Assembly: GCA_002269645.1 (NCBI GenBank)
Contig: NIVC01000199.1
Coordinates: 496,001-560,000, forward strand
DNA: 64,000 nt
Direction of reading: 5' to 3'
Source: Macrostomum lignano
Lineage: Eukaryota
The notes under the pieces were generated by a model that worked only from the letters and a program-made list of their open reading frames with translations, searched no databases and had not been told where the DNA came from. Shown in pieces: positions 1,153-64,000 of the stretch. A program made the position numbers and the translations under genes. The first letter of the stretch is position 1; each line of letters begins with the position of its first letter.

Positions 1153-1700
1153 TCAGTCACTGCTGAACATCAACTTAAGCAAGTCTTCGGCGTCGAACTG
1201 CGGTTGATCCAGATCGAAAGGCGGCGAGGACAGCGACGAGCTGATGGGCGACTGGCTGTCTGGCGTCTCGGCATCGTCAGTCATCAGGATGTCCAGCCCG
1301 TCCAGCTCCGTTGACATCAGTGGCAACAGTTCGTCCCTGGGATCCGAGGCTGGCGACTGCAGAATTCGGTCCAAATCGACGTCGCGATCGAGACAGGGCA
1401 ACTGCTGCAGCTCTTGCTGGTCGGCTTCGTCTGGCTGTTCCAGCGTTGCCTCTTCTTCATCGTTGTAGTCTGCTTCTTCGAGGCCTGACTCGTTGGGCAG
1501 CAACAGTCGGTACACTCTGTAGGCGTTGCAGCCTCTTGACTGGCTGAGAGTGGGCTCGTAACGGATGTACCGGCTGCCGCGGAGGGCGCAACGAAAGTTC
1601 TGCTTTAGTCTCTTGTAGTCTGGAATTTTCTGTAGTTTCTGCTTCTTTTTGTTGTTGCCACTGTCAGGCAGGTGCGAGTGAGCTTGCAGACAGTCGGGAA
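1153..1700 (-). CDS. IRF-family transcription factor, exon 2 (end of DNA-binding domain plus acidic tail)
   Basis: Acceptor TTTCAG|TT at 1700 is phase-compatible with exon 1. Encodes PDYKRLKQNFRCALRGS...NAYRVYRLL, resembling IRF PDPKTWKANFRCAL...YRVY. Confidence 0.75.
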
Positions 1701-1884
1701 CTGAAATTAATAAATGTGAGGTAAGCTTACACATTTGCTTTTAGAGGGCAATGTAATATAATCAAAAGTAATAAATCTTGACTCATCTCAGTTGTATCTC
1801 AGTCCCTACACGGCAAAACGTACCTATATCTTATAATTCACAATAAGCAATAAAAAGTAATAGTTCTGCCACTCAGCCACTCAC

Positions 1885-4049: not shown

Positions 4050-4680
4050 TCAGCTGTAGTGATTCTGCAAGATCCTGGCCAGCCTCATAGAGGGATACTG
4101 CGGCACAATAAACGCAAAGCACTGGAAGTAGATAAGAAAGCAGGTGCTGATCATCAGAAATATCACGGGCCAATTGGCCGCCTGTGGTGGCACATCTCCC
4201 AGGCCGATGTGGAATATTGACTGCACAATGAGCCACAGCTGGTCCTTCAGAGCCAGCTGCCTTTCGCTAAAGGAAAACACGGCCCAACAGACGGGGAAAA
4301 TCACAATCATCAGCACCAGATTGCTCAGGTAGAATCGGGACCTTCTGTACACATCCGCGTTGCGTATTCTGACAGCCCACAGCACCATCATGGTTCTGTT
4401 TGACCGGCTCTCCACCTGCTGCCCGTGCACCCAACGGCGATAGCAGTAGAGCTGGAAAAAGTAAAACAAATGATAGAGCTGGTGGTGGTACATGTACCAT
4501 ACCGGAACCACAATTAGCATGCACAGGCTGGCGCAGAAGTACTGCAGCTCGGAGGCGCCAGCAATGTCCCCATAGCCAATGAGCGACACCAGGGTGACGG
4601 CGTAGTACATCGACTGGGTGAAGGTCGGCCTCAGCTCGTGTTGTTTGATCGCGTTTTTTATGTCCTTGTAGACCAGGTTT
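4050..4680 (-). CDS. Two-pore-domain (K2P/KCNK-like) channel, exon 2 (P1-M2-M3-P2-M4)
   Basis: TFTQSMYYAVTLVSLIGYGDIA (pore 1) and LKDQLWLIVQSIFHIGLGDVPP (pore 2), with hydrophobic segments in K2P order. Acceptor CGTAG|A at 4680 is phase-compatible with exon 1. Confidence 0.8.
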
Positions 4681-5413: not shown

Positions 5414-5889
5414 CTGCCTAGCTGTCTGAGTCGACTCAGCTTCTCAGCTAGCAGAGTTTTATTCAAATCTGCTTTGCCGGACATCTGAACAACCTCAGCC
5501 AGAGAGCGATTGTACTCAGCCTCTCTGGCCTTCAATAGCTTGTACCGCTCACTGTCGGTGTGTCCGTTCCTGTTGACATAGTAGAACACAACGGCAATGA
5601 GAACGGTGAGCAGGCACAGGAGGACCAGAAGAACGGCGGATATTTCTAGACTACGCAGCACCGAGTCCAAGAGCTTGTGCAGTTGAAACCGTCGCCGAAT
5701 GTTATCCAACTGCTGGGCGATGCTTGCGCGCAGTCGGGTTGTGGCCCTCGGCCGGGCTCTCTGCAGCTGCCGCCGCCGCCGCCGCTGCTGCTGCGGTTGC
5801 TGCGGTTGCTGCTGCTGCTCCCCGCTAGCACCAGACTGTCCGGTGGCTCCAGAGGCTTCCGTTGGACTACTCGAGGCCAGATCTGTCAT
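5414..5889 (-). CDS. Two-pore-domain channel, exon 1 (N-terminus, M1, cap helices)
   Basis: TM segment ISAVLLVLLCLLTVLIAVVFYYV is followed by a cap-like helical region. Donor AG|GTGAG at 5414/5413; 476+631 nt = 368 aa plus stop. Confidence 0.75.
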
Positions 5890-6399
5890 AGTAATTCTTG
5901 TAGATAATCTACATCTATATATGAAAATAAATTCTTACCGACAGAAAAGACAAGCTGTCTCTTCAAGCTTGTTGTCAATCAATTTGCTTTTTTTCTGATC
6001 GGCAAGCATTTTGGCCATAGACTGCGTCACTAAGGCTGACTTACTTGACTTAGCTTAGCTGCAGGATGGTCGCTTGACACAGCGGGGAGGCGAGAGTCGC
6101 CCATTCCGCCCACCCCCTAAGGCCCGCAGACAGGCAGAGGCGTGGAACCGGTCAGGATGGTCCGCTAGTCAGTCCTGCAGCGGGATCTTCAGGATCTTTG
6201 AAGAACGTGGCTCGTCTTGTCGCTCGGAGGAACTGGATGAGCCGTGGGATGCTGAGTTCCAAGCATGGATTATTAAAATGAAAAACAATGTAGACAATCA
6301 TTTATTGAATTAACTTTCTGTTTATCTCTATCATTCCAAAGTTGCGCAGATGACCCGCAACCCGCCTAATCAGGGAAGCTGAGATTCGAGACCACGTCC

Positions 6400-9362: not shown

Positions 9363-10138
9363 CCGCAAGGTTGTTCTGGCTGGCTGAGGTGGCAGAGGCG
9401 GCTCAAGGCCCGTCTCGTTGCTCCTGCTAGCTACCGTTTGTTCTTCTGTCAGTAACTCTATTTTATAGCACCCATCTGCCGTAAAAAAATGAACTAAAAA
9501 AATTGAAGGGTTTCGCTTCAACAAGAATGCTAAGGTGCTAGCTGTTACTGTCAATATTAACTGTCTGTCTGAGCGCGAGTACGAGTATATTGACTAGCAA
9601 GTTGACCCCCTTCGGGTGCGAAATGCACATGTTAAAGAGCTAAAATTGGAGTTCGAACTAAAAATCCTAAAAAAATTATATGGGCAAAGAGACAAACAAA
9701 AAATGCAAATAATACTTTCTTGCGATATAATGCAACTTTGACCGAGAATATATAATGTACTGTTGGTCTTCTGATTTATATTTCTAGGTAAAAATGAAAG
9801 GTAAAATGTTGGACTTCCAGTTTTTGATGGATTTTAAAACGATTTTTTGCTTAGAGAGATAATACAAACAGCTAGCTGGGTCGAGTGATAACCATTGGGA
9901 GGTGCGCGAACAGGAACGAAGGTTAAGTGAATTTTATTGACTCAAAAATTGTCTTGACGTTATATAGCAGAGGGTTAAAGTTTTTATTTAGACAATATAT
10001 AGCATCCTTCTCCGACATGTGTTGTTATTTTCATAATGTTTTCTTGGCTGATTTTCGCATTTTCACGGTAGATTTTTCTTTCTCAAGTTCGATTCAAGAG
10101 TCGCAACGAGCGCGACACCACAGTGCTCAAATCTCTTG

Positions 10139-13484: not shown

Positions 13485-14055
13485 CCAGCCATTTTTGGCC
13501 AGCTCTCCTGCCTGACGCCACCCCACAGCCGCTAAAGGAGAAATTAAAACGCGTAGTGGACCAGTTCAGGCCAGTCATGCCAATATGATATTCCCATATG
13601 CACTGATAACATGAGGCTCTACATCATTTCATAGCTAGCTAAACTCGAAAAGGTAATAGTAGACAGCAACACACGCAGGATGCTTGCAGCAATCTGCTTT
13701 TAAACTTTGCAGACATAAAGTCATTGAGCTGTGCATGCTTTGCTTGTGCTCCGCGCTATGCTCAGTGTCCCTGGCTTGCGCAGCAAGCCAATAGGCCGGA
13801 TTCGCTGGTTCAGCCCCAAAACCGCGCTAAACTAGCTAGAGCTGGTCGCTAAGGAGAGGATCCGCTCTAGCTGCCCTCGCAGGGCCGTAGCGGAGGATTT
13901 TAACGCAGTGGTTGTGTTAGCTGCGGTTCTCCCCGATCTACGTACGCTTCAGTCCCCCACGGCACTACTTTTAGTCCCTTTTCCAGGAGGGATCCGTTGC
14001 CAGGGGGGGGGGAGGAGGATCCGCGGTCGCTATTGATCGGTGGCATTTTTCATGA
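13485..14055. repeat. Interspersed repeat of unknown class, copy 2
   Basis: Colinear similarity to 8700..9362. Confidence 0.7.
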
Positions 14056-26948: not shown

Positions 26949-29900
26949 CACGGTGCTACCATAGTCGGAAAATTGCTAAAAAAAATCACCGGAAAAGTTA
27001 TTTGTCACAATCGATACTCGAATTAGTAAGGATTCCTTAGAAGAAAAAATAAAAATTGTAGTTGTTCGTTTTAGCTCAAAAAGTGCTATTTTCAGTTTTT
27101 ACCATAGACGAATTAATAAAAAAGTGAAGTATCACCGTACTATTTAGAAATCAATTCGATTGAGTCCAGGATCAAAGGCAAGCATTAAAAAACATGTTAC
27201 TGATATTCATCAATGATTGGTTGATGCCTAAAAGCTACACATTTGACTTGGATGGGCCTACCACAAGAGAGCCTTAAGGCCCATTCACACCGCCATCAAA
27301 CGAGACCAAATTTCAAGTGATCACACGACATATGCATAGTTTTTCATCCCTTTGTATGTAAGTCATGTGAGTTGGTTGCTTGTTTGATGGTGTTGTGAAT
27401 GAGCCTTTATACTCGTACTCACCCTGTTCGGATGAGTCACTGGTTCAGATCCACCCAGCCCGCCCAGACCCAAAGCTTTACCCTCAGCCAATCCCTCCAC
27501 CATTCTACATACGTAGGTAAGCACTCGTATGCTGTGGCTTGCTCTCTCTCTTCCTGAGCTGTACGTACAAAGTATGATATTGTACATTGGTGTGTGCTCT
27601 TTGCACCAAGCACTCGCCGAACCACCCTCAGTCTTGTAATGCCATCGTGCTCATTTATGTTTTTCATCAATATAAACGTCAAACCTTAAAAGTAAGGAGG
27701 TCCCGTTTGAGGAGGTTTGTCTCTGTCTAAAAGTCTGTCTAACCAACTCTGTCTAAAAGTGTTTCATCGAAACATTTAGTTGCAACGATTGTGCTTGCGT
27801 GTACACAGTTTTTGTCATGCCACTATCACACGAAGATTGCCTCAATCGGATCTGCATTTTGTGCTTTTTGAAGGCAAAAGAGTTGCGATCCGTTACGCCC
27901 TGGATGCTGGCCATCATCAATCGGCACAGTGGCTGGCTCTACGATCTGCACGATAATCGCGTTCCCAAGGCAATTTGTGGCACGTGCAGATTCGCTCTGC
28001 AGCAGCTGGAGAAGGGCCAACGGGCTGATGTGCCACCGATGTATGACTTCAGGGACGTGCAGCCACTGCCGGTGACCCGATCAGTGGGCCAAGATGGATG
28101 CGACTGTAAGATCTGCAGCACTGCCAGATGCAGAGTCCATCCTCCAGAAGCCAACGTCCCAAAGCGGTCTGTTGGGCGGCCGAGTTTGACGGCGGACGAG
28201 GCTACAACGCCCAAGCCCGAAATGGTCAAGGTCTGCTCCTTCTGCATCAGTCCTATTGGCAGGGGCAAGCCGCACACATGCAACAGACCCACAAGACTGC
28301 AGAATGCGCATGCCCTGTTGCAGGAAGCGTCCCCGGAATTCCCAGAGCGGCTCGCCACAACAATTGTGCGGCAGAAACTTATTACTTCAGGCTCCGGAGA
28401 CACAGCCTCGGGCATCACCGTGCTGGCATCCAACGCTGGACCCTCAATGAGGCTGGCCGTGAATCCGCCGCCTCCGAAGCCAACAGCGGTCTTCACGGCG
28501 GATAATATGCGTCATCTGCAAGGTGAGCTGGGCCTCAGTTCGCGCAAAACGGAGGTTGTACTTCGAAATCTTCGGTCTTCGATTGGCGCCTCAGCTGTCC
28601 AGAGCAACATCCGGCAGACATTGAGGGAGATGGATCACGAACTGGATGACCTCTTCCAAGCGAAGCAGCTGGCGTTTATCCGAGAAGAGAGGGGAAGGCA
28701 GACTCCAGCTGAGCAGTGGGCCGTTGTCTGCACTGATGTGGTCGAGCTCCTGGGCCGCATGATTGCAAACCGCCGGCTGATGGATGTTGCTTCCACAGTC
28801 GTCAGAATTGGAATCGATGGTGGAGGTGGGTTCTTGAAGCTCTCGATATCCGTTTTTGACCTGTGCGTGTGTGCTGGTGAGGAGCAGCAGAAGGGGGCTG
28901 ATCGCCGATTCCTCGACACTGGCGTGCATCGGGCCGTCATCCTTGGCATCGCTCCCAACACGCAGGAGAACCACAGGAACCTGGAGTGTCTCTGGAGAGC
29001 TGCCGCCTGCAGCTTCTGTCGGCGAACATCAGCATCGCGTGTGACCTGAAGCTTGCCAACATCCTTCTCGGCTTGATGGCCCACAGCAGCTCGCATGCCT
29101 GCACCTGGTGCAACGTTAATAAAGGGAGCCTTGACAGCTGCGGCGAGCCAAGGACCTTTGGCAGCCTCAGTGAGAAATACCAGGCCTACCTGGCTGCTGG
29201 TGGTGAACGCCAACTAGCTAAGCACTTCGATAATGTCGTCCAGCCCAGCATCTTTTCCGCTGGAGTTGAAGTCCCGGTGTTGCACATTGTCCCTCCACCG
29301 GAGCTGCACCTACTGACCAGTGCGGTCCATGTGCTGTACGAGGGTCTGCATGGTGAAGCTTGGCTTACAGCTTGCAATGTCCAATGTGACAAGCATCACG
29401 GTGGCAGCTTCACTGGCAATGCGAGCCGCAAGTTGCTGCGCAACGTGGACCTGCTAGAAGCGATGTGCCCGATGGCAGCGCTGCCGTTTGTTGCCGCCCT
29501 TCGAGCGTTGAACTCGGTCGTGGTGTCATGCTTCGGGAGTGAGCTGCGTCCCAATTTCGAGCAGGCGATTCAGGAATTTTGCACCAGTTATGCCGATCTC
29601 GGCATTTCCATCAGTCCAAAAATCCACGCGATTTTCCACCACGTCAGTGACTTCTGCCGCGCCAAGGACAAAACAGGCCTGGGGCCATGGAGCGAACAAT
29701 GCATGGAGTCGATGCACAGAGACTTCCTCCTGCATTGGGAGAGATACAAGGTGGCGAGCACGCATCCTCTCTTCGCTGAAAGGCTCCTGGCAGCTGTGCG
29801 GTGTTACAACAGTCGCCATTTGTGAGCGTTTTGTGGAAAGTGCGAATCCGGAACTGCAACAGTTGAACTGCAACGCAAGTATTGGACAGTTATGAAGTCA

Positions 29901-36144: not shown

Positions 36145-36609
36145 ATCCGCTCCCATCTAGTGTGGAATTTCATCAGCAGCCGGGTGTCACTCTCCTATCT
36201 GAACTTTCCTGTCGATTGTAACGTCGGAGGAGCCACGAAATTCTCTCGGGCGGTAGCGGACACGATCCCCGTGATGTCCAGCTCTGGCAACGCATTGGCC
36301 CGCATCCTTGACCCAGGCTCTACCCTAATCATGAAGATCGACATCGAAGGTGGAGAAGCAGATTTTTTGAAAACTTCCTACCAACTTTTTGATAACTTTT
36401 CTATACCTGTAGTGCAGATGGAATGGCTTAGGCGGCATATGTCGCGCGATGAGCAGGTTTTTATGATGAATTTTTTTACTAGCAGAGGCTACGTGCCGAC
36501 ACTTGGCGGCAGTTTTGCCTCTCTGAGCACTGCTCGACTGGCTAGGTTCAATGGCGATATTGTTTGGACTAAGCTTAGCTTTTTTAACCAGGGCCATTTG
36601 TTTGCCTAG
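36145..36609 (+). CDS. FkbM-family methyltransferase, exon 4
   Basis: LIMKIDIEGGE...PVVQMEW...FFTSRGY...GDIVW; acceptor TTTCAG|ATC. Whole CDS 1182 nt = 393 aa. Confidence 0.85.
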   Translation: MRSHLVWNFISSRVSLSYLNFPVDCNVGGATKFSRAVADTIPVMSSSGNALARILDPGSTLIMKIDIEGGEADFLKTSYQLFDNFSIPVVQMEWLRRHMSRDEQVFMMNFFTSRGYVPTLGGSFASLSTARLARFNGDIVWTKLSFFNQGHLFA

Positions 36610-51804: not shown

Positions 51805-52275
51805 AGAATCGCCCCTACATCAACCATGAGAATCGCCCCTACACCAACCATGAGAATCGCCCCTACACCAACCATGAGAATCGCACCTACACCATGAGCA
51901 TCGCCCCCACACCAACCACGAGAATCTTCCCTATACCATGAGAATCGCCCCTACACCAACCATGAGAATCTCCCCTATACCATGAGAATCGCCCCCACAC
52001 CAACCATGAGAATCTCCCCTATACCATGAGAATCGCCGCTACACCACCCTGAGAATCGCCGCTACACCACCCTGAGAATCGCCCCTACACCACCCTGAGA
52101 ATCGCCGCTACACCACCCTGAGAATCGCCCCTACATAACCATGAGAATCGCCGCTACACCACCATGAGAATCGCCGCTACACCACCCTGAGAATCGCCGC
52201 TACACCACCATGAGAATCGCCGCTACACCACCCTGAGAATCGCCCCTACACCACCCTGAGAATCGCCCCTACACC
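51805..52275. repeat. Minisatellite, ~21-24 bp unit (CATGAGAATCGCCCCTACACCAAC)
   Basis: Tandem copies visible. Confidence 0.9.
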
Positions 52276-52914
52276 ACTGCCTACTCCACAAGTAGTTTCA
52301 ATGCTCTCATACATTTTCAGCACTTGAGCAGCCAGACGGTCAGACACATGATTAGCTGTAGCCTGTACACATCTTATGGCCCCCGCAAGCGCTGACATGG
52401 CTCTCTGAGGCATAATAGCGACAATTTGATTCCACTTGACTGCAGCTCGCTACTTGCGTGCGGCCAGGCCAATCAGCTGACATTGGAGAGGCGCAGGCTG
52501 CTACTTTGCAATAGCTGATTCCAAATCCACGCTGCCAAGAATTTAATTTTTGCCTCCTTGGCTGCTGTCTCCTAGCTGGTTTTCTTGCTTAAGAGCTATT
52601 GCTAAGGAGGCTGGAGCTACCATTGGAGCAGGCGGTATGCGTATGCATGTAGGAGTTATATATAGATCTGGGTTTTTTGAGTGGCAATTCTCATCCTGTG
52701 GTCTTCAAACTGGAGCACTCTTCAAAAATTTTATCCTGACAAATTAGTTAAATTATTTGTATTCTCGGCACGAATGTCGCACGAGGAGAAGCATTTCTGG
52801 TGTCTGTTGCCCAAAGTTGCTCACTGCCAGACTGGCGAGTAAGTTTTGAGTAGGTTTTACCCTGGGAATGGGGAGATATTTTGAGTATAGGTATCCATCG
52901 AATAGACTGTACAC

Positions 52915-53480
52915 CTGTTTGTAGATATCCTAGACAGAGACTGTAGATATCCCAGGCATAGGCTGTAAATAGCCTAGTCAAAGACTGTAGATATCCTAGG
53001 CATAGGCTGTGGATATCCCACGCAGAGACTGTAGATATCTCACACAGAGACTGTAGATATCCTAGACAGAGACTGTACATATCCTAGACAGAGACTGTAC
53101 ATATCCTAGACAGAGACTGTACATATCCTAGACAGAGACTGTACATATCCCACGCAGAAACTGTAGATATCCTAGACAGACTGTAGATATCTCACACAGA
53201 GACTGTAGATATCCTAGGCATAGGCTGTGGATATCCCACGCAGAGACTGTAGATATCTCACACAGAGACTGTACATATCCTAGACAGAGACTGTACATAT
53301 CCTAGACAGAGACTGTACATATCCTAGACAGAGACTGTACATATCCCACGCAGAAACTGTAGATATCCTAGACAGACTGTAGATATCCTAGACAGACTGT
53401 AGATATCCCAGGCATAGGCTGTAGATATCCCAGGCATAGGCTGTAGATCTCCCAGGCATAGGCTGTAGATATCCCAGGCC
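52915..53480. repeat. Minisatellite, 20-22 bp unit (CTGTAGATATCCTAGACAGAGA)
   Basis: Tandem copies visible. Confidence 0.9.
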
Positions 53481-53653
53481 TGAATCAGTTTATTCGAGCC
53501 GTATTTCGAAAAGTTTATTGCATGGATTCTACAAATTTCTTTCCGCTCATTTATTTGAAATAAGAACTTTTTCCCGATATTTTCTTATCCGTTCTACTTT
53601 CAGTAGCACACTTCAAACCAATTGACCATTAGTTTTTGCATTGCATTTCTAGC

Positions 53654-53988
53654 ATGTCTCTGACAGTCTCCGAACTGCAGCGTTTAAACGCGCAGCGTCA
53701 AGCTGAAATCAACGAACTCGGCCGACAAGTTGACGAATTAAAACTGGCCGTCAGATCTCGGGATCGTCAGATAGCGGAGCTGCTGTCACAGCTGGACAAG
53801 TACCAGTCCGTGTTCCACTCGCGACATCGGCAGCCAGGCGGTGCAGCGTTCAGCGGTGGCGGTGGCAGCATCAGCGGCGGAGGTCGGAAGCGACGCACCA
53901 GAGGCATGGGCATCTCGGCTGAGCCGCAAAGCGAGGCAGCTCTGGCAACGATGTCGTCCGCGGTGAAGAGCTTTTCCAAGACCAAGGG
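53654..53988 (+). CDS. PRKG1: cGMP-dependent protein kinase, alternative first exon A (PKG-I alpha-like leucine zipper plus pseudosubstrate)
   Basis: MSLTVSELQRL...LDKYQSVF...RRTRGMGISAEPQ...KSFSKTK resembles PKG-I alpha LHKCQSVL...RTTRAQGISAEPQ...RKFTKS. Donor GG|GTGAGC, phase 2. Confidence 0.8.
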
Positions 53989-54004
53989 GTGAGCGAAGCT
54001 GTGG

Positions 54005-54865
54005 GAGCGACTAGCCGAGTGCCTTTCTTTGGGAGAGTGACTAGCCGAGTGACTTTCTGCGGGAGTGACTAGCCGAGTGCCTTTCTGTGGGAGTGACTAG
54101 CCGAGTGACTTTCTGTGTGTGTGAATAGCCGAGTGACTTTCTGCGAGAGAGTGACTAGCCGAGTGACTTTCTGCGGGAGAGTGACTAGCCGAGTGCCTTT
54201 CAGTGGGAGTGACTAGCCGAGTGACTTTCTGCTGGAGAGTGACTGGCCGAGTGACTTTCTGTAGGAGTGACTAGACGAGTGACTTTCTGTGGGAGTGACT
54301 AGCCGAGTGACTTTCTGCGGGAGAGTGACTAGCCGAGTGTCTTTCCGTGGGAGAGTGACTAGCCGAGTGACTTTATGTGTGAGTGACTAGCCGAGTGACT
54401 TTCTGTGTGAGTGACTAGCAGAGTGACTTTCTGCGGGAGAGTGACTGGCCGAGTGACTTTCTGTAGGAGTGACTAGCCGAGTGTCTTTCCGTGGGAGAGT
54501 GACTAGCCGAGTGACTTTCTGTGTGAGTGACTAGCCGAGTGACTTTCTGTGGGAGTGACTAGCCGAGTGAATTTCTGCGGGAGAGTGACTAGCCGAGTGC
54601 CTTTATGTGGGAGTGACTAGCCGAGTGACTTTCTGTAGGAGTGACTAGCCGAGTGCCTTTATGCGGGAGAGTGACTAGACGAGTGACTTTCTGTAGGAGT
54701 CACTAGCCGAGTGACTTTCTGTAGGAGTGACTAGCCGAGTGACTTTCTGCGGGAGAGTGACTAGACGAGTGACTTTCTGTAGGAGTGACTAGCCGAGTGA
54801 CTTTCTGCGGGAGAGTGACTAGCCGAGTGACTTTCTGTGTGAGTGACTAGCCTAGTGGCTTTCTG
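54005..54865. repeat. Minisatellite, 28-30 bp unit (GAGTGACTAGCCGAGTGACTTTCTGTGG)
   Basis: Tandem copies start about 15 bp after the exon 1A donor. Confidence 0.95.
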
Positions 54866-55374
54866 TGGAAGTGAAAAATTATGATTGATATTAAATAAGT
54901 AATTATGTTGAGAATCAGGGATGATAGCATCAACAATTTAGTGGCAGGAAGATATAAGTAATCATATATTACAGAAATATTGTAGTAACCGAATGAGCGG
55001 CAGCTGTGCTTACGTCCAGCTCTCTATTCTAAGCCAAGAATATCCCAGCATGGCTTATTATATATCTAAATAAGCCTTATTTTTAGCTGTAAGAACCCAG
55101 CTGGTATCGGCTCGACCCTAACAATTTTTTCGTTTTCGTTTCATCTCGGTTCCGCAAAAAAACTGCATTTAATTTCGCCGCCTCTCCCAATCCGCCACTC
55201 TGAGGCAAGCTGGCAGCTCCTACACTGATAATTATTCTGGCGAGGCGACAAATTCGAAGCTCGCAGTGCAGCTTGTTCAATTTATCCCATTTGGGGAATT
55301 TGCGACTTTTTTTTCTCCGGTTATAACTCTCCTGGCCTGCTGAAAATGCAGATCTGTGTGTGTTTCTGTCTGTG

Positions 55375-55650
55375 TGTGGGAGGAGGGTAGAGGGTAGGGA
55401 GGAGGGTAGAGAGGGTAGGGAGGAGGGTAGAGAGGGTAGGGAGGAGGGTAGAGAGGGTAAGGAGGAGGGTAGAGAGGGTAAGGAGGATTGGGAGGGTAGG
55501 GGAGGGTAGAGAGGGTAGAGATGAGGGTAGGGAGGAGGGTAAAGAGGGTAGGGAGGAGGGTAAAGAGGGTAGGGAGGAGGGTAGGGAAGGGTAGGGAAGA
55601 GGGTATAGAGGGTAGGGATGAGAGTAGAGGGGTGGGGCGGAGAGTAGAGA
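55375..55650. repeat. Purine-rich ~21 bp repeat (GGGAGGAGGGTAGAGAGGGTA)
   Basis: Visible directly. Confidence 0.85.
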
Positions 55651-56214
55651 GGGAGAGAGGTAAAGTAAAGGGCAGAGAGATAGCTTAAAGCAGATAAAGA
55701 GCCAATCTTTTCCCCAGTTAGAAATTAGAATCTTGTCTCTCCACTGATGCCCAGGGCTGTTACATCGTGCTGGAATACTCGCTTTAATATTAGTGATGTG
55801 TATTACGCGAGATGCAAGGCAAGAGCTGATGAAGAGATATATGCGCCTCTCTCCACTCCGCCCTTCTTTAATTACGGCCCCAGACTCATGCTGGCATATT
55901 ATTAGCCCGTTTAAGCCCGGTGCGCACGTTGATTGCAGAAACCGGTGAAGAGCTTCGTTTAATGAGAGTGGGAGAGATGGGGGAGAGAGACTGAGGCAAC
56001 TGGCGTAGCGAAAATGATGAAGAGTTTTTCTATCGAATCTCAGATTATTCATATCTGACTTATAGTTTCAGAGTGATTATTTTTTAAGGAAAAATGCCTT
56101 TAAAATGATGGCTCCTTAGACGCTTCCTTTATTAGTGTCTCTCGCCAGAATTGCATGTACTTTTTAACTGCAATGTGTTATAATTGGTTTAAATCTAGGG
56201 AAATATCACCGAAT

Positions 56215-57480
56215 CCCAAATGCCCGCACTCAGGATTCTAAATCCATAATACCCTTGCTCAGAACCTCAAAATCCTCATGCTAAGAATCCCAAATCCTCA
56301 TGCTAAGAATCCCAAATCCTCATGCTAAGAATCCCAAATCCTCATGCTAAGAATCCCAAATCCTCATGCTAAGAATCCCAAATCCCCACGCTAAGAATTC
56401 CAAATCCTCATGCTAAGAATCCAAATCCCCACGCTAAGATTCCTAAATCCTCATGCTCAGAATCCCAAATCCCCATGCTCAGAATCCCAAATCCCCATGC
56501 TCAGAATCCCAAATCTTCATGCTCAGAATCCCAAATGCCCATGCTCAGAATCCCAAATCTTCATGCTCAGAATCCCAAATCCCCACGCTAAGAATCCAGA
56601 ATCCTCATGCTAGGAATCCAAATCCCCACGCTAAGATTCCTAAATCCTCATTCTCAGAATCCAAAATCCTCATGCTAAGAATCCCAAATCCTCATGCTAA
56701 GAATCCCAAATCCCCACGCTAAGAATTCCAAATCCTCATGCTAAGAATCCAAATCCCCACGCTAAGATTCCTAAATCCTCATGCTCAGAATCCCAAATCC
56801 CCATGCTCAGAATCCCAAATCCCCATGCTCAGAATCCCAAATCCCCATGCTCAGAATCCCAAATCCCCATGCTCAGAATCCCAAATCCCCATGCTCAGAA
56901 TCCCAAATCCCCATGCTCAGAATCCCAAATCTTCATGCTCAGAATCCCGAATCCCCATGCTTAGAATCCCGAATCCTCATGCTCAGAATCCCAAATCCCC
57001 ATGCTCAGAATCCCGAATCCTCATGCTCAGAATCCCAAATCCCCATGCTCAGAATCCTAAATCCTCATGCTCAGAATCCCAAATCCCCATGCTCGGAATA
57101 CCAAATCCCCATGCTCAGAATCCCAAATCTTCATGCTCAGAATCCCGAATCCCCATGCTTAGAATCCCGAATCCTCATGCTCAGAATCCCAAATCCCCAT
57201 GCTCAGAATCCCAAATCCTCATGCTCAGAATCCCAAATCCCCATGCTCAGAATCCTAAATCCTCATGCTCAGAATCCCAAATCCCCATGCTCGGAATCCC
57301 AAATCCCCATGCTCAGAATCCTAAATCCCCATGCTCAGAATCCCAAATCCCCATGCTCAGGATCCTAAATCCTCATGCTCAGAATCCCAAATCCCTATGC
57401 TCGGAATCCCAAATCCCCATGCTCGGAATCCCAAATCCCCATGCTCAGAATTCTAAATCCCCATGCTCAGAATCCCAAAT
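56215..57480. repeat. Minisatellite, 22 bp unit (CATGCTCAGAATCCCAAATCCC)
   Basis: Tandem copies visible. Confidence 0.95.
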
Positions 57481-58164
57481 CATCACGGTAAGAATATTAA
57501 ATCCGCCACACTTATAATCTAAAATTTCTATGCAATCAATTCGAAATCCTCGTTCTCAAAATTAGGATCAATCTAATATACAAATACGAGTATTCTCCAT
57601 AGGTCAAATACTTTAGCCAGAAAAATAGTAAGTCTTTTTGCATCCATTTTTTCAGCGTTGACCACTGTCAATTTCTGCATTGAAGAAGAAAAACTTCAGA
57701 AAGGTTATTTTACTGTCCAAATTTTTATAAGCTAGGCGAGCTTTGAGCTGAGTGAAGGTTTTAGCAGGCAGCAGCGGGTACTTTGGAACTTTTTGTGTCG
57801 AAAAAAAAGTCTTTTTCCACAGCGAGAGTATATAATAGCTTAGTGATGGCGAGAGCAGTGAACAGGGGGTGCTCTGGAATATTAAACTACAAAGGCTTGC
57901 TCGAGCTTTTGCTACTAAGGGCAGAGCCAGTTAGCTCAATGTGCGTTCTCATAGGCTGGGATAAGACTCCTGTCCTGTCCCAGCTATCCATGCTGTCCGT
58001 TCCCGCGATAAAATGATGGCTAAATAATAGTAAAGTTAGTCAGACTGCCGCTCTCGTTTTGCACGTAGCTAGCTACCTAGTGTCCAAAATTATTGAAAGA
58101 TCTACTCCAGAAAGGAAGATTCAAGTTCATCAAAGTGATTTTTAAAAACAAAAAGACTCTTTTG

Positions 58165-58520
58165 AGTTTTTCTAAGAAACAAAGAATTCGTCGGAGCGTT
58201 TCAAAGAAACTGGAATTTAATCGGACAAATTCTAAGAAAGTGATCTTTCCTCGTATTGTTTCTAAGAATCTAAAAATTAATCGAAGAGTTTCTAAGAAAC
58301 AAAAAATTCGTCAAAGCGTTTCAAAGAAAGTGGAAATTAATCGGACAAATTCTAAGAAACTGATTTTTCCTCGCATTGTTTCTAAGAATCTACAAATTAA
58401 TCGAAGAGTTTATAAGAAACAAAGAATTCGCCGGAGCGTTTCAAAGAAACTGTAATTTAATCGGACAAATTCTAAGAAACTGATTTTTCCTCGCATTGTT
58501 TCTAAGAATCTACCAATTAA
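58165..58520. repeat. Three copies of a 120 bp unit built from four 30 bp subunits, each beginning TTC(T/A)AAGAA
   Basis: Motif starts at exact 30 bp intervals from 58170 to 58500. Confidence 0.9.
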
Positions 58521-58839
58521 TCGAAGAATTTCTATCGAAATTCGTCCAGGTTCGTCTGAGTGTTTCTGTGAAGCAGAAAATTATTCTGAGACTTTCCAAC
58601 AGCATCAACGTTTCACGAAAGGGTTTCTAAGAAAACGCTTTCGAGTGCAACTTTTCGTCGGATTGTTTCTAAGAAACATAAAATCTGCCGGAGTGTTCAA
58701 AACGAAAGCCTAATCAGCAAATTAGTCAAGGCTCGTTCTCCAGTCTGCGATTTCTACAAAAAAGACAAACGTCTCAGTTTAAAATAAGCTCAAAGAAGGC
58801 TTCGGATATTGACTTTCCGAAGCAGACTCTTGAAAAAAT

Positions 58840-59192
58840 ATGATGCTGGGCACGCTGCGCGAACTTCAACTGGCTCTGCAGCAGCGGATGCAGGAGCTTC
58901 GGCAGCGGGACAGAATGATTGACGAACTCGAATTGGAGCTCGACGCGAAGGACTCGCTGATCGAGCGAATGCAGGAAGAAATCGATCGCCTGCAGAATCT
59001 GCTGTACAGTCGGCAGTACAGCCAGCAAAATCATCCTCACCATTATCAGCAGCAGATGTCGCTGCCTCATCAGTCGTCTCAGCTGGCGGGCAAACTTTCC
59101 ACTCAGTTTCGCGCTAAGCGGACCGCCATCAGCGGCGAGTCCAGCTCGGAGATCGCCGTCTACGAGGCCAAGGCGTTTGACAAGGCCGCTCG
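58840..59192 (+). CDS. PRKG1: cGMP-dependent protein kinase, alternative first exon B (PKG-I beta-like)
   Basis: [41 protein letters not shown]...RAKRTAISGE closely resembles PKG-I beta [39 protein letters not shown]...RTKRQAISAE. Donor CG|GTAGCT, phase 2. Confidence 0.85.
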
Positions 59193-59404
59193 GTAGCTGC
59201 GGGCTCCTCCGAGATTTTGGGGATCGGAGGGAGTTGGGGATGGTGACCTGGGATTTTTCGCGCGATTTTCGCCAACCCCCAAGGCACAGAGAGTGTGCAT
59301 TCCTGACCATGAGAAAGCCAGGGACGCTGTACACCCTGTGTGATCGTTTGCCCGCGTAGTATGTTCCCGTGCTGAAAGCTTAACGGAACAAGCTTCTCCC
59401 AGGC

Positions 59405-59700
59405 ATGTTAGGGATTCCATAGAAGGATTTGGGATTCCAAAGAATGTTAAGGGATTCCGTAGATGGATTTAAGATTTCCCAAGCGTGTTAGGATTCTGTA
59501 GGAGATTTGGGATTTCCCAAACACTTTAGGTATTCCTTAGGAGGATTTGGGATTTCCCAAACATGTTAGGATTCTGTAGAAGGATTTGGGATTCCAAAGA
59601 ATGTTAAGGGATTCCGTAGAAAGATTGAGATTTCCTGAACGTGTTAAGGATTCCGTTGGAAGATTTGGGATAATCCCAAACATTTTTACGGATTCCTTGG
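59405..59700. repeat. Degenerate GGGATTCC-containing tandem repeat
   Basis: Recurrent GGATTTGGGATT(T)CCCAA / TTAGGATTC units. Confidence 0.6.
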
Positions 59701-59905
59701 TTTGATTTGGATTTGCCATACGATATTGAATATTTAAAATTTACGAGCGTAGGATCTCCAGGGAGTGTTTTTGGTTCCCTTTGAATTTTAAATTCTCCCT
59801 AAATGACTTCCAATCGAGGACTAGATTTCCCATCAGTGGAATTATTTATTCGAAGTTGTCCATGTGGTGAAGTTTTCTAACTGCCTGTGACACATTTCCT
59901 CACAG

Positions 59906-60072
59906 AACGCGCGACATCATACGCCAAGCCATTCTCGACAATGCGTTCATGAAGAACTTGGACAATGGCCAAATCAGCGAAATCATTGACTACATGTACC
60001 CTGTCAGTCACAAGTCCGGGGCCATCATCATTAAGCTGGGAGAGGTTGGCTCTCTTGTCTACGCTATTGAAG
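59906..60072 (+). CDS. PRKG1: PKG common exon 2 (start of cyclic-nucleotide-binding domain A)
   Basis: TRDIIRQAILDNAFMKNLDNGQISEIIDYMYPV...IIKLGEVGSLVYAIE; acceptor CACAG|A, donor G|GTCAGT. Confidence 0.92.
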
Positions 60073-60084
60073 GTCAGTGCGAGT

Positions 60085-61605
60085 GAGGTGTACGGTTTTA
60101 CGACTTCTGGTCATAGAGCTCTGTGCATTCTCGTCATGTAGGTTTTACGACTTCTGGTCATAGAGCTCTGTGCATTCTCGTCATGTAGGTTTTACTTCTG
60201 GTCATAGAGCTCTGTGCATTCTCGTCATGTAGGTTTTACGACTTCTGGTCATAGAGGTCTGTGCATTCTCGTCATGTAGGTTTTACGACTTCTGGTCATA
60301 GAGCTCTGTGCATTCTCGTCATGTAGGTTTTATGACTTCTGGTCATAGAGCTCTGTGCATTCTCGTCATGTAGGTTTTGAGACTTCTGGTCATAGAGCTC
60401 TGTGCATTCTCGTCATGTAGGTTTTACGACTTCTGGTCATAGAGCTCTGTGCATTCTCATCATGTAGGTTTTATGACTTCTGGTCATAGAGCTCTGTGCA
60501 TTCTCGTCATGTAGGTTTTGACTTCTGGTCATAGAGCTCTGTGCATTCTCGTCATGTAGGTTTTACGACTTCTGGTCATAGAGCTCTGTGCATTCTCGTC
60601 ATGTAGGTTTTATGACTTCTGGTCATAGAGCTCTGTGCATTCTCGTCATGTAGGTTTTGACTTCTGGTCATAGAGCTCTGTGCATTCTCGTCATGTAGGT
60701 TTTACGACTTCTGGTCATAGAGCTCTGTGCATTCTCGTCATGTAGGTTTTAGACTTCTGGTCATAGAGCTCTGTGCATTCTCGTCATGTAGGTTTTGAGA
60801 CTTCTGGTCATAGAGCTCTGTGCATTCTCGTCATGTAGGTTTTAGACTTCTGGTCATAGAGCTCTGTGCATTCTCGTCATGTAGGTTTTACGACTTCTGG
60901 TCATAGAGCTCTGTGCATTCTCGTCATGTAGGTTTTGAGACTTCTGGTCATAGAGCTCTGTGCATTCTCGTCATGTTTTTGAGACTTCTGGTCATAGAGC
61001 TCTGTGCATTCTCGTCATGTTCATGTAGGTTTTATGACTTCTGGTCATAGAGCTCTGTGCATTCTCGTCATGTAGGTTTTGAGACTTCTGGTCATAGAGC
61101 TCTGTGCATTCTCGTCATGTTCATGTAGGTTTTGAGACTTCTGGTCATAGAGCTCTGTGCATTCTCGTCATGTTCATGTAGGTTTTATGACTTCTGGTCA
61201 TAGAGCTCTGTGCATTCTCGTCATGTAGGTTTTATGACTTCTGGTCATAGAGCTCTGTGCATTCTCGTCATGTAGTTTTGAGACTTCTGGTCATAGAGCT
61301 CTGTGCATTCTCGTCATGTTCATGTAGGTTTTGAGACTTCTGGTCATAGAGCTCTGTGCATGTCATGTAGGTTTTATGACTTCTGGTCATAGAGCTCTGT
61401 GCATTCTCGTCATGTAGGTTTTGACTTCTGGTCATAGAGCTCTGTGCATTCTCGTCATGTCATAGTTTTGAGACTTCTGGTCATAGAGCTCTGTGCATTC
61501 TCGTCATGTAGGTTTTGAGACTTCTGGTCATAGAGCTCTGTGCATTCTCGTCATGTTCATGAAGGTTTTGAGACTTCTGGTCATAGAGCTCTGCGCATTA
61601 TCGTC
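60085..61605. repeat. Minisatellite, ~47 bp unit (GGTTTTACGACTTCTGGTCATAGAGCTCTGTGCATTCTCGTCATGTA), PKG intron
   Basis: Tandem copies visible. Confidence 0.95.
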
Positions 61606-61736
61606 ATGAAGAATCTTGTAACTAAGATTTTAATTCATACTTTTATATAGTTACGAGCTTCTTGCTTTCTGAGAGTGTAAGTAATCAAAACTTTTCTTAT
61701 TGCAGTTCCTGAACTTCCCCCCTCCCGGTATTGCAG

Positions 61737-61853
61737 ACGGGTCAGCTGAGGTCACGAACACCAAGGGCGAGAAAATCAACGAAATTGGACCCTGCACCGT
61801 GTTTGGGGAGCTGGCCATCCTGTACAACTGCAAGCGGACCGCCACCGTGCGGG
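61737..61853 (+). CDS. PRKG1: PKG exon 3 (phosphate-binding cassette of CNB-A)
   Basis: DGSAEVT...[22 protein letters not shown]; acceptor TTGCAG|AC, donor G|GTGAGC. Confidence 0.92.
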
Positions 61854-61861
61854 GTGAGCAG

Positions 61862-62270
<409 letters not shown>

Positions 62271-62436
62271 TGTTCGCTTATCTTAGAAGTTTTGACGTAT
62301 TGTAAGAGAGCATTATTTATTTCGCATTTGCGCAATCTAGTTTTTTGTCTTTTTTATACTCACTACTGTAAGTAGCGAGTTAGTTTGTAGCGTCAATTTT
62401 TTGCAGTTGATGTTTATTAAATTCTTTAATCCGCAG

Positions 62437-62542
62437 CCCTGTCCAACTGCAAGCTGTGGGCCATAGACAGGCAGACATTCCAGTCCATCATGATGAAGAC
62501 GGGCCTGATGAAGCAGAAAGAATACACCAGCTTCCTTAGAAG
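62437..62542 (+). CDS. PRKG1: PKG exon 4; gene continues beyond the window
   Basis: ALSNCKLWAIDRQTFQSIMMKTGLMKQKEYTSFLR; acceptor CCGCAG|CC, donor AG|GTGCGA. Confidence 0.92.
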
Positions 62543-62884
62543 GTGCGAACTTTTTTCTCCTTTATTCCTCGTATTGATTGTTTTAAATAATATGCAAGCT
62601 TGAAGCGGAAAAATAATTAAAGATGTTTTACCTTTGAGTTGGCCTACCAGTTCAAATTTTGTCTCTAAATTTATTTGGTAACAACAGAGACATATGAGTA
62701 ATTGTTTATCTCCATCTCCCTCTTTGTTGCCTAATCGACCTGCTTATACGACTTTGGCTGCTCCTGTGCCCCATTGCAGCTTCTGTTCTCCTTGTCAATT
62801 TGATTCCGCTGCGATAAGAAAGAGTCACAACCTCATAGTGCGGTGAACTGTCTTTCATCTTTGCCACTTCTTATACAACTCCCT

Positions 62885-63140
62885 CTCTGTCTCCCTCTCT
62901 TACTCCATCTCCCTCCATCTGTATCTCCTTCTCCATCTCCCTCTTCATCTCCCTCTCCATCTCCCTCTCCATCTTCATCTCCCTCTCCATCTCCCTCTCT
63001 ATCTCCCTCTTTATCTCCATCTCCATCTCCCTCTCCATCTCCCTCTCCATCTTCCTCTTCCTCTCCATCTCCCTCTCCATCTTCCTCTCCCTCTCCATCT
63101 CCCTCTCTATCTCCCTCTTTATCTCCATCTCCATCTCCCT
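62885..63140. repeat. Pyrimidine-rich (CCATCT/CCCTCT)n hexamer repeat
   Basis: Visible directly. Confidence 0.85.
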
Positions 63141-63866
63141 CTTCATCTCCCCGTTCAGAATCTGTCTCCCCTCTCTTGCATATTCCTGTCATTCTGTCCG
63201 TCTCTCCAATTCCCCTCACATCTCCCACCCTGCGCTGTCGTTAATCCCCGCATATGTTTCTCCCCTAAATATCCCCTCTCCACAGTCCCATCCGCTACAC
63301 TGCGCCAGCACCAGATTGCACTAATCCCAAACTCAAGGTGAAAGAGACTTCGTCTTCCCAACAGACGATCGAGCTCAGCTTAGCCGTACTGTGTGAGCCA
63401 AGCAGTTCCAGGGCACTAAGGCGGGATTTGCAACCTGACCTGATGCTGAACCCCCCCCCAGCATCTTTTTAGTATCTGCATCTCCGCCGACAGGCAGGGC
63501 CATCCTCGCCTCTCGCTATCCTCCTCTTTTCTTCGCCCTCTATCGGCCATCACCGCGGCAGTATCGAGCCGAAGCAAAATGGCCTTCGCATTTATTAGTT
63601 ATTACACGGGAGCGGCTCCACCGCACTAACCTATAAAGCACTAGTTCCCTGCATGTAATCAAGCTTTCCCCTTTCTGCGGTCTGTACACCCCCCCCCCTG
63701 CAAGCAACTTTTTATTTCTCTTACCCCACTGCGCCGCGAAGAGAATGGGCATCATCTGCTTGTCCCGGGTTTTCTCCCCTTCCCCTCCCCTCTCCAGTTT
63801 CCCCTCCAACTGCTCTCTTCATCGACTGCTCGCTTCAAGTTCCTCAAGTCATGTTCAATGGGAATT

Positions 63867-64000
63867 AGTCAGTCAGTCAGTCAGTCAGTCAGTCAGTCAG
63901 TCAGTCAGTCAGTCAGTCAGTCAGTCAGTCAGTCAGTCAGTCAGTCAATCAGTCAGTCAGTCAGTCAGTCAGTCTGTCAGTCTGTCAGTCTGTCAGTCTG
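63867..64000. repeat. (AGTC)n microsatellite
   Basis: Visible directly; runs to the window end. Confidence 0.95.

Follow-up and report, generated by a model that had tools for sequence, protein, structure and literature searches.

The 64,000-nucleotide stretch of the Macrostomum lignano genome analysed here (contig NIVC01000199.1, positions 496,001 to 560,000; hereafter the window, to which all coordinates refer) contains the 5' end of a gene for PKG-I, a protein kinase regulated by cyclic GMP (cGMP), in which two ATG-opening coding exons, A upstream and B downstream, precede a common exon 2. Judged from sequence comparison, this gene is very probably the flatworm orthologue of PRKG1, foraging and egl-4, with exons A and B as alternative alpha- and beta-type exons that descend from a duplication predating the split of protostomes and deuterostomes.

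The anatomy of this region was established by direct reading and translation, and all of its exons lie on the forward strand. Exon A (53654..53988; 335 nt, or 111 codons plus 2 nt) opens with an ATG and encodes a leucine zipper (53663..53815, residues 4-54, located by a heptad test, by alignment and by comparison of A with B), a linker, an autoinhibitory pseudosubstrate (RKRRTRGMGISAEPQ, 53885..53929) with Gly at the phospho-acceptor position, and a hinge, ending in phase 2 at the donor GG/GTGAGC. The following interval (53989..58839) lies within intron 1 of the alpha transcript and consists mostly of tandem repeats. Exon B (58840..59192; 353 nt, or 117 codons plus 2 nt), in which a second ATG immediately follows that at 58840, encodes a leucine zipper (58852..59004, residues 5-55) containing the acidic motif IDELELELD, a Q/H-rich linker, an autoinhibitory pseudosubstrate (FRAKRTAISGES, 59107..59142) with Ala at the phospho-acceptor position, and a hinge, and likewise ends in phase 2, at a donor (CG/GTAGCT) that matches the consensus more poorly than that of exon A. 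The sole acceptor to fit both 3n+2 exons was TTTCCTCACAG/A at 59906, the first base of which completes the split codon as GGA (Gly) after exon A and as CGA (Arg) after exon B, the sequence then continuing as TRDIIRQAILDNAFMKNLDNGQISEIIDYMYPVSHKSGAIIIKLGEVGSLVYAIE. The reading frame remained open from both the A join (...KTKG/TRDIIRQAILDNAFMKNL) and the B join (...DKAAR/TRDIIRQ...). The initial annotation had described two ATG exons with zipper and pseudosubstrate, both ending in phase 2 and both fitting the one acceptor at 59906, and its coordinates were confirmed to the base.

Common exon 2 (59906..60072, acceptor CACAG/A) encodes the start of cyclic-nucleotide-binding domain A (TRDIIRQAILDNAFMKNL...), exon 3 (61737..61853) encodes the phosphate-binding cassette of that domain, and exon 4 (62437..62542) is the last within the window, the remaining gene, domain B included, lying past its end. 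In tblastn comparisons exons 2-4 were 57-61% identical to residues 85-225 of human PKG I (domain A), and exon 2 was 57% identical to residues 85-144. The C-terminal AGC kinase domain is present in an M. lignano paralogue (P0152), and the corresponding part of the present gene falls outside the window. No third PKG N-terminal exon of the A or B kind was found anywhere in the 64 kb, the interval between A and B included. One base 5' of the exon A ATG, the sequence (TTTCTAG/C ATG) also shows an AG that closes a pyrimidine-rich tract (TTTTTGCATTGCATTTCTAG, 53634-53656). Because this AG resembles a splice acceptor, a non-coding (untranslated-region) exon or a trans-spliced leader may come before exon A, which in that case would not be a true first exon.

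Both exons display an a/d heptad pattern that runs unbroken for approximately 51 residues and is in register with that of human I-beta, the a/d residues being VLNRILVLVRILLYF in exon A, LLLRLRILLKIMILL in exon B and LLLKLRILLKILLYI in human I-beta, and the heptad scores of the two flatworm exons were equalled by only 0.1-0.2% of shuffled sequences. The two zippers could be aligned with each other without gaps, with 33% identity over 54 ungapped residues, and exons A and B are paralogous to each other. After each zipper there follows a low-complexity linker and then the pseudosubstrate. That of exon A carries Gly at the acceptor position, as in the RAQGISAEPQ of I-alpha, with R83, G86 and ISAEP invariant in alignment A1, and that of exon B carries Ala, as in the KRQAISAEP of I-beta, with K93, R94, S98 and E100 invariant in alignment A2. 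For both exons the top Pfam match was PF16808 (PKcGMP_CC), at 24.4 bits for exon A and 20.1 bits for exon B.

The family assignment of exon B is, on its sequence, beyond doubt. Its zipper matched the structure of the human I-beta zipper (PDB 3NMD) with E = 1.9e-12, the motif IDELELELD being identical between the two. An exhaustive search with exon B as query retrieved 163 cluster representatives with beta-type N-termini, and a profile search retrieved 790 proteins with alpha-type N-termini, among them first exons of vertebrate I-alpha and numerous invertebrate ones. From these N-termini four profiles were built, for alpha and beta in invertebrates and in vertebrates, with the window exons included in none. 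Exon B scored 98.5 bits against the invertebrate beta profile and 74.3 bits against the vertebrate beta profile, compared with 12.3 and 5.6 bits against the respective alpha profiles, and exon A scored 74.1 bits against the invertebrate alpha profile and 43.0 bits against the invertebrate beta profile; the E-values, well outside chance expectation, were 2e-32 for exon B against the beta profile and 5e-25 for exon A against the invertebrate alpha profile. In a neighbour-joining analysis of 60 N-termini (102 columns, 500 bootstraps) the alpha and beta types were cleanly split in 499 of the 500 replicates; exon B fell with the beta types in 499 (99.8%) and exon A with the alpha types in 414 (83%). 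These comparisons bear out the proposed likeness of the downstream exon to PKG-I beta and lend moderate support to that of the upstream exon to PKG-I alpha.

The position of the junction between exons 1 and 2 was found to be the same throughout. At every readable locus it is in phase 2 and lies one residue ahead of the motif [ST][KR][DE]LI, and this applied to both exons of the window, to the 1-alpha and 1-beta exons of reindeer, to the alpha exon of Lottia, to that of a firefly along with its exon 2, to the beta exon of Owenia, and to annelid-like beta exons and their exon 2 in two metagenomic contigs (L022 and L014). The reindeer donors are AG/GTAGGC for 1-alpha and CA/GTAAGC for 1-beta, and the common acceptor is CCGCAG/G TCC AAG. 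The order in the window, with A at 53654, B at 58840 and exon 2 at 59906, is alpha, beta, exon 2, which had been predicted to be that of mammals and which is consistent with the reindeer gene: in reindeer the intron that separates 1-beta from exon 2 spans 78.6 kb and contained no 1-alpha exon, and 1-alpha must hence lie upstream of 1-beta, an order that is read from intron content, with the alpha and beta proteins deriving from different assemblies. This agreement in order and in phase also speaks against the notion that exons of different PKG paralogues were joined across tandem repeats during assembly of a repeat-rich, partly duplicated genome. Satellite arrays do make up most of the 4.9 kb between A and B, and M. 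lignano possesses, besides this gene, one or more PKGs whose N-terminus is of beta type (P0152), but the sequence bears no mark of a join, and exon B did not come from that paralogue, the identity between them being only 47% (75% for exon 2). An assembly artefact of this kind is exceedingly improbable.

Beta-type exons were recovered from Aplysia, Sinanodonta, Batillaria, Owenia, Helobdella, a sea urchin and the M. lignano paralogue, and alpha-type exons from vertebrates, beetles, lice, a psyllid, Lottia and Patella, such that protostomes and deuterostomes each hold both types. The proposal that the isoform architecture predates vertebrates and is of bilaterian age is therefore sound, and it is not new. 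A catalogue of human substitutions derived from tandem exon duplication (Martinez-Gomez et al. 2021, NAR 49:8232, PMC8373072) lists PRKG1 among 21 human events older than the vertebrate-invertebrate split, tracing it to Bilateria, and reports equivalent exons in multiple invertebrate species, with 'PRKG1 (Taurus scarab)', a beetle, as the example; the bilaterian age has thus already been published. The main text of that paper gives neither a flatworm or other spiralian nor sequences for PRKG1. Our literature searches for invertebrate alpha and beta PKG isoforms otherwise returned mostly nothing.

Several observations weigh against an ancient alpha/beta pair in this gene, beginning with those on exon A. 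In the PDB its best kinase match was the beta zipper 3NMD, with E = 0.15, and the I-alpha zippers 1ZXA and 4R4L were not matched at E≤10, although a human I-alpha query does retrieve both; because of this weak result the alpha label needed the separate profile and tree tests described above. The vertebrate-only profiles hardly separated the exon (27.8 bits for alpha, 25.8 bits for beta), and its zipper is of beta length, one heptad longer than in the alpha exons of vertebrates, molluscs and most insects. Moreover, 2 of 36 metagenomic loci carried two beta-type first exons in tandem, at 1086-1448 and 3447-3971 in L014, upstream of exon 2 (from 5184), and at 5621-6067 and 9722-10048 in L020. Duplication of the first exon is thus a recurrent event, some lineages having re-duplicated the beta exon, and a lineage-specific origin of exon A is formally possible as a result. 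The pair might, then, have been duplicated within the flatworm lineage, with the alpha motifs of exon A acquired by convergence or exchange and the likeness to vertebrates partly coincidental. The gap-free alignment of the exon A zipper with both exon B and 3NMD would suit such an origin, as would the variable zipper length within the alpha family itself, insect exons included (e.g. P0268, P0281 and P0297). Nevertheless, both halves of exon A favoured the alpha profile over the beta profile, by 37.4 to 26.0 bits for the zipper half and by 31.2 to 13.0 bits for the half comprising pseudosubstrate and hinge. The exon also contains the alpha-specific motifs SQLDKYQSVF (DKYRSV in beta) and R-x-x-GISAEPQSEA, the GISAEPQSEA portion being identical in beetles, and these features, together with its place among the alpha exons in most bootstrap replicates, make a duplication confined to flatworms unlikely. 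It is possible, if doubtful, that the old duplication survives in the flatworm locus at an intermediate stage or as a mosaic, the alpha exon having kept, regained or gained by exchange with its beta neighbour a beta-length zipper while bearing an alpha pseudosubstrate, with the acidic beta docking face IDELELELD unchanged.

Exon B, in turn, has the weak donor GTAGCT, its pseudosubstrate tail has drifted (AISGES, not AISAEP), as has the end of its zipper (DRLQNLL, not DKYRSV), and the PF16808 scores of both exons fall under the gathering cut-off of 35. Loss or degradation of one exon type is known in insects. In a firefly the 13.5-kb intron 1 contained no beta exon by either tblastn or a six-frame profile search, and Drosophila for (dg2), which has several promoters and alternative N-termini, bears zipper and pseudosubstrate in exon 4 only: in the P1/P1-alpha/P3 N-terminus the zipper is of alpha type and is accompanied by ALGISAEPQS, and the P2/P4 N-terminus (exon 7) has neither zipper nor pseudosubstrate (PMC10299703). 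The firefly and Drosophila cases together indicate that exon losses occur. By the same token a single exon might be in use in the flatworm, the other being a decaying or rarely used relic, so that only one N-terminal form is made. This is very unlikely, given that both exons begin with an ATG, stay open for 111-117 codons and retain the right phase, zipper periodicity and a basic pseudosubstrate core, and given the score of exon B on the beta profile. Exon A is furthermore represented among gene models, since one frameshifted M. lignano model (P0045) contains a stretch identical to it and another (P0061) connects an A-type N-terminus with exons 2-4, its out-of-frame reading of exon 4 matching the window exactly. 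No exact match to the open reading frame (ORF) of exon B was on record in the contig index.

A further point against the pair is that no other invertebrate locus was found in which a single piece of DNA carries both an alpha and a beta exon. Within ±10 kb, a flank that the introns exceed, Owenia and Aplysia showed the beta exon only and Lottia and Patella the alpha exon only. Metagenome and Logan contigs with alpha exons (L001-L004 and L009-L011) yielded no partner, their ends lying too near the exon or other genes following downstream, and a metagenome scan with the beta profile returned 36 loci, none of which had an alpha exon upstream. The closest hint of such a locus comes from the ladybird Henosepilachna, for which a second, weak PKcGMP_CC ORF is listed within intron 1 of an alpha-type model, approximately 10 kb short of the model's end.

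Some of the loci retrieved in these searches depart from the usual exon structure. In a marine-metagenome contig of animal origin (L001, 3751-4143) the alpha-type exon runs directly into the start of exon 2, the intron at the conserved phase-2 position being absent, and within a few kb after the PKG exon genes for a potassium channel and for CAMSAP were called as a single ORF of 1625 residues; together the sequences point to a very compact, intron-poor animal genome as its source. In the Aplysia gene model (L006) the beta zipper (10001-10123) and beta pseudosubstrate (13505-13615) are approximately 3.4 kb apart, and the beta N-terminus of this mollusc thus seems to be split by an intron, unlike those of the flatworm, annelid and vertebrates. 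It was also observed that several stand-alone 'hypothetical' or 'uncharacterized' proteins of approximately 90-155 residues (P0072 from Aplysia, P0129 from Owenia, P0086 from Sinanodonta, P0279 from Lottia and P0277 from Patella) are alpha or beta first exons; alternative first exons are probably being mis-annotated systematically in this way. For instance, the orphan models XP_005107533.1 (Aplysia), CAH1794820.1 (Owenia), LOTGIDRAFT_107417 (Lottia) and SNE40_019010 (Patella) correspond to the same alpha or beta exon as in the flatworm, with the same phase-2 end, but they were read past the donor to the next stop and annotated as stand-alone genes, both exon 2 and the partner exon lying beyond 10 kb. 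This constitutes an annotation problem across many invertebrate genomes.

The flatworm gene most closely parallels vertebrate PRKG1, which also has two ATG-containing 5' exons with zipper and pseudosubstrate, the alpha exon upstream, and a phase-2 join to exon 2 at the same residue; the beta zippers are approximately 60% identical, with the acidic IDELELELD shared in full, and the acceptor residue is Gly in alpha and Ala in beta in both. The two genes differ in scale, the flatworm exons being 4.9 kb apart with 0.7 kb from B to exon 2, compared with 78.6 kb from 1-beta to exon 2 in reindeer. They differ too in the extra heptad of exon A, in its Tyr within DKYQSV where vertebrate I-alpha has the Cys of HKCQSV (Cys42, a known redox sensor), and in the AISGES of exon B as opposed to AISAEP. 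Isoform usage is documented for vertebrate PRKG1; the flatworm pair is described here from its DNA sequence. Drosophila for is likewise a PKG-I orthologue, but it has kept no alpha/beta pair, which the flatworm does.

In mammalian PKG I the zipper mediates both dimerisation of the kinase and the docking of isoform-specific partners, and the N-terminus tunes cGMP sensitivity. By extension, each flatworm exon would supply a start codon, a zipper for dimerisation and docking, a linker, and an autoinhibitory pseudosubstrate with its hinge. The mature mRNA would take either A or B, presumably in a mutually exclusive manner, spliced in phase 2 to exon 2, resulting in two kinases with the same cGMP-binding and catalytic parts and different N-termini. 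Their expression would call for separate promoters or trans-splicing, and a beta promoter or 5' untranslated region would be situated in 53989..58839. As in mammalian PKG I, the pseudosubstrate would fill the catalytic cleft until cGMP is bound, and the N-terminus would determine both the docking partners of the zipper and the amount of cGMP needed for release of the pseudosubstrate, by analogy with mammalian I-alpha and I-beta. On the same analogy, the two flatworm N-termini are likely to have diverged in function.

The PKG introns and flanks (52023-63998) are nearly filled by unrelated tandem arrays with periods of 4, 21-23, 39-58 and 120-144 bp, in which the PKG exons form small islands amid satellite DNA. 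Arrays were located at 52920-53474, 53999-54874, 55378-55660, 56241-57481, 58169-58534, 59397-59671, 60089-61608 and 61861-62273, and include 56 copies of a 22-bp satellite between exons A and B (56241-57481) and a (GTCT)n run of approximately 104 copies that begins 8 bp past exon 3. The array at 59397-59671, downstream of exon B, holds GGATTTGGGATT, which reads as the 22-bp satellite core in reverse complement. Pairing of these two arrays within the introns, which would loop out exon B, was considered and dropped, as no inverted repeats of ≥30 nt were found around the exon; the complementarity is thus confined to short cores.

Elsewhere in the window, coding-looking ORFs matched an IRF-type DNA-binding domain fragment (1153-1734, reverse strand; PF00605, 29.3 bits), the pore of a two-pore-type potassium channel (4050-4610, reverse strand; PF07885, 29.6 bits) and an FkbM-like methyltransferase fragment (36160-36609, forward strand; PF05050, 24.9 bits). 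A further pair of long, overlapping ORFs (416 and 279 residues) on the forward strand (27799-29825) belongs to no clear family and is possibly a mobile element.

Existing knowledge of PKG evolution is unchanged by this locus. What it adds is a compact, fully readable instance from Platyhelminthes, which extends the beetle evidence to Spiralia, together with the observation of the extra heptad in an alpha-type exon. Few alternative-exon events reach back to the bilaterian ancestor, and with its architecture contained in 6.4 kb, as against more than 80 kb in mammals, the gene offers a compact example of one. Since M. lignano allows transgenesis, isoform-specific knock-down or reporters would be feasible in this organism. 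Were the mosaic state of exon A to hold true, isoform-specific anchoring of PKG-I to beta-specific partners would already have been present in the bilaterian ancestor.

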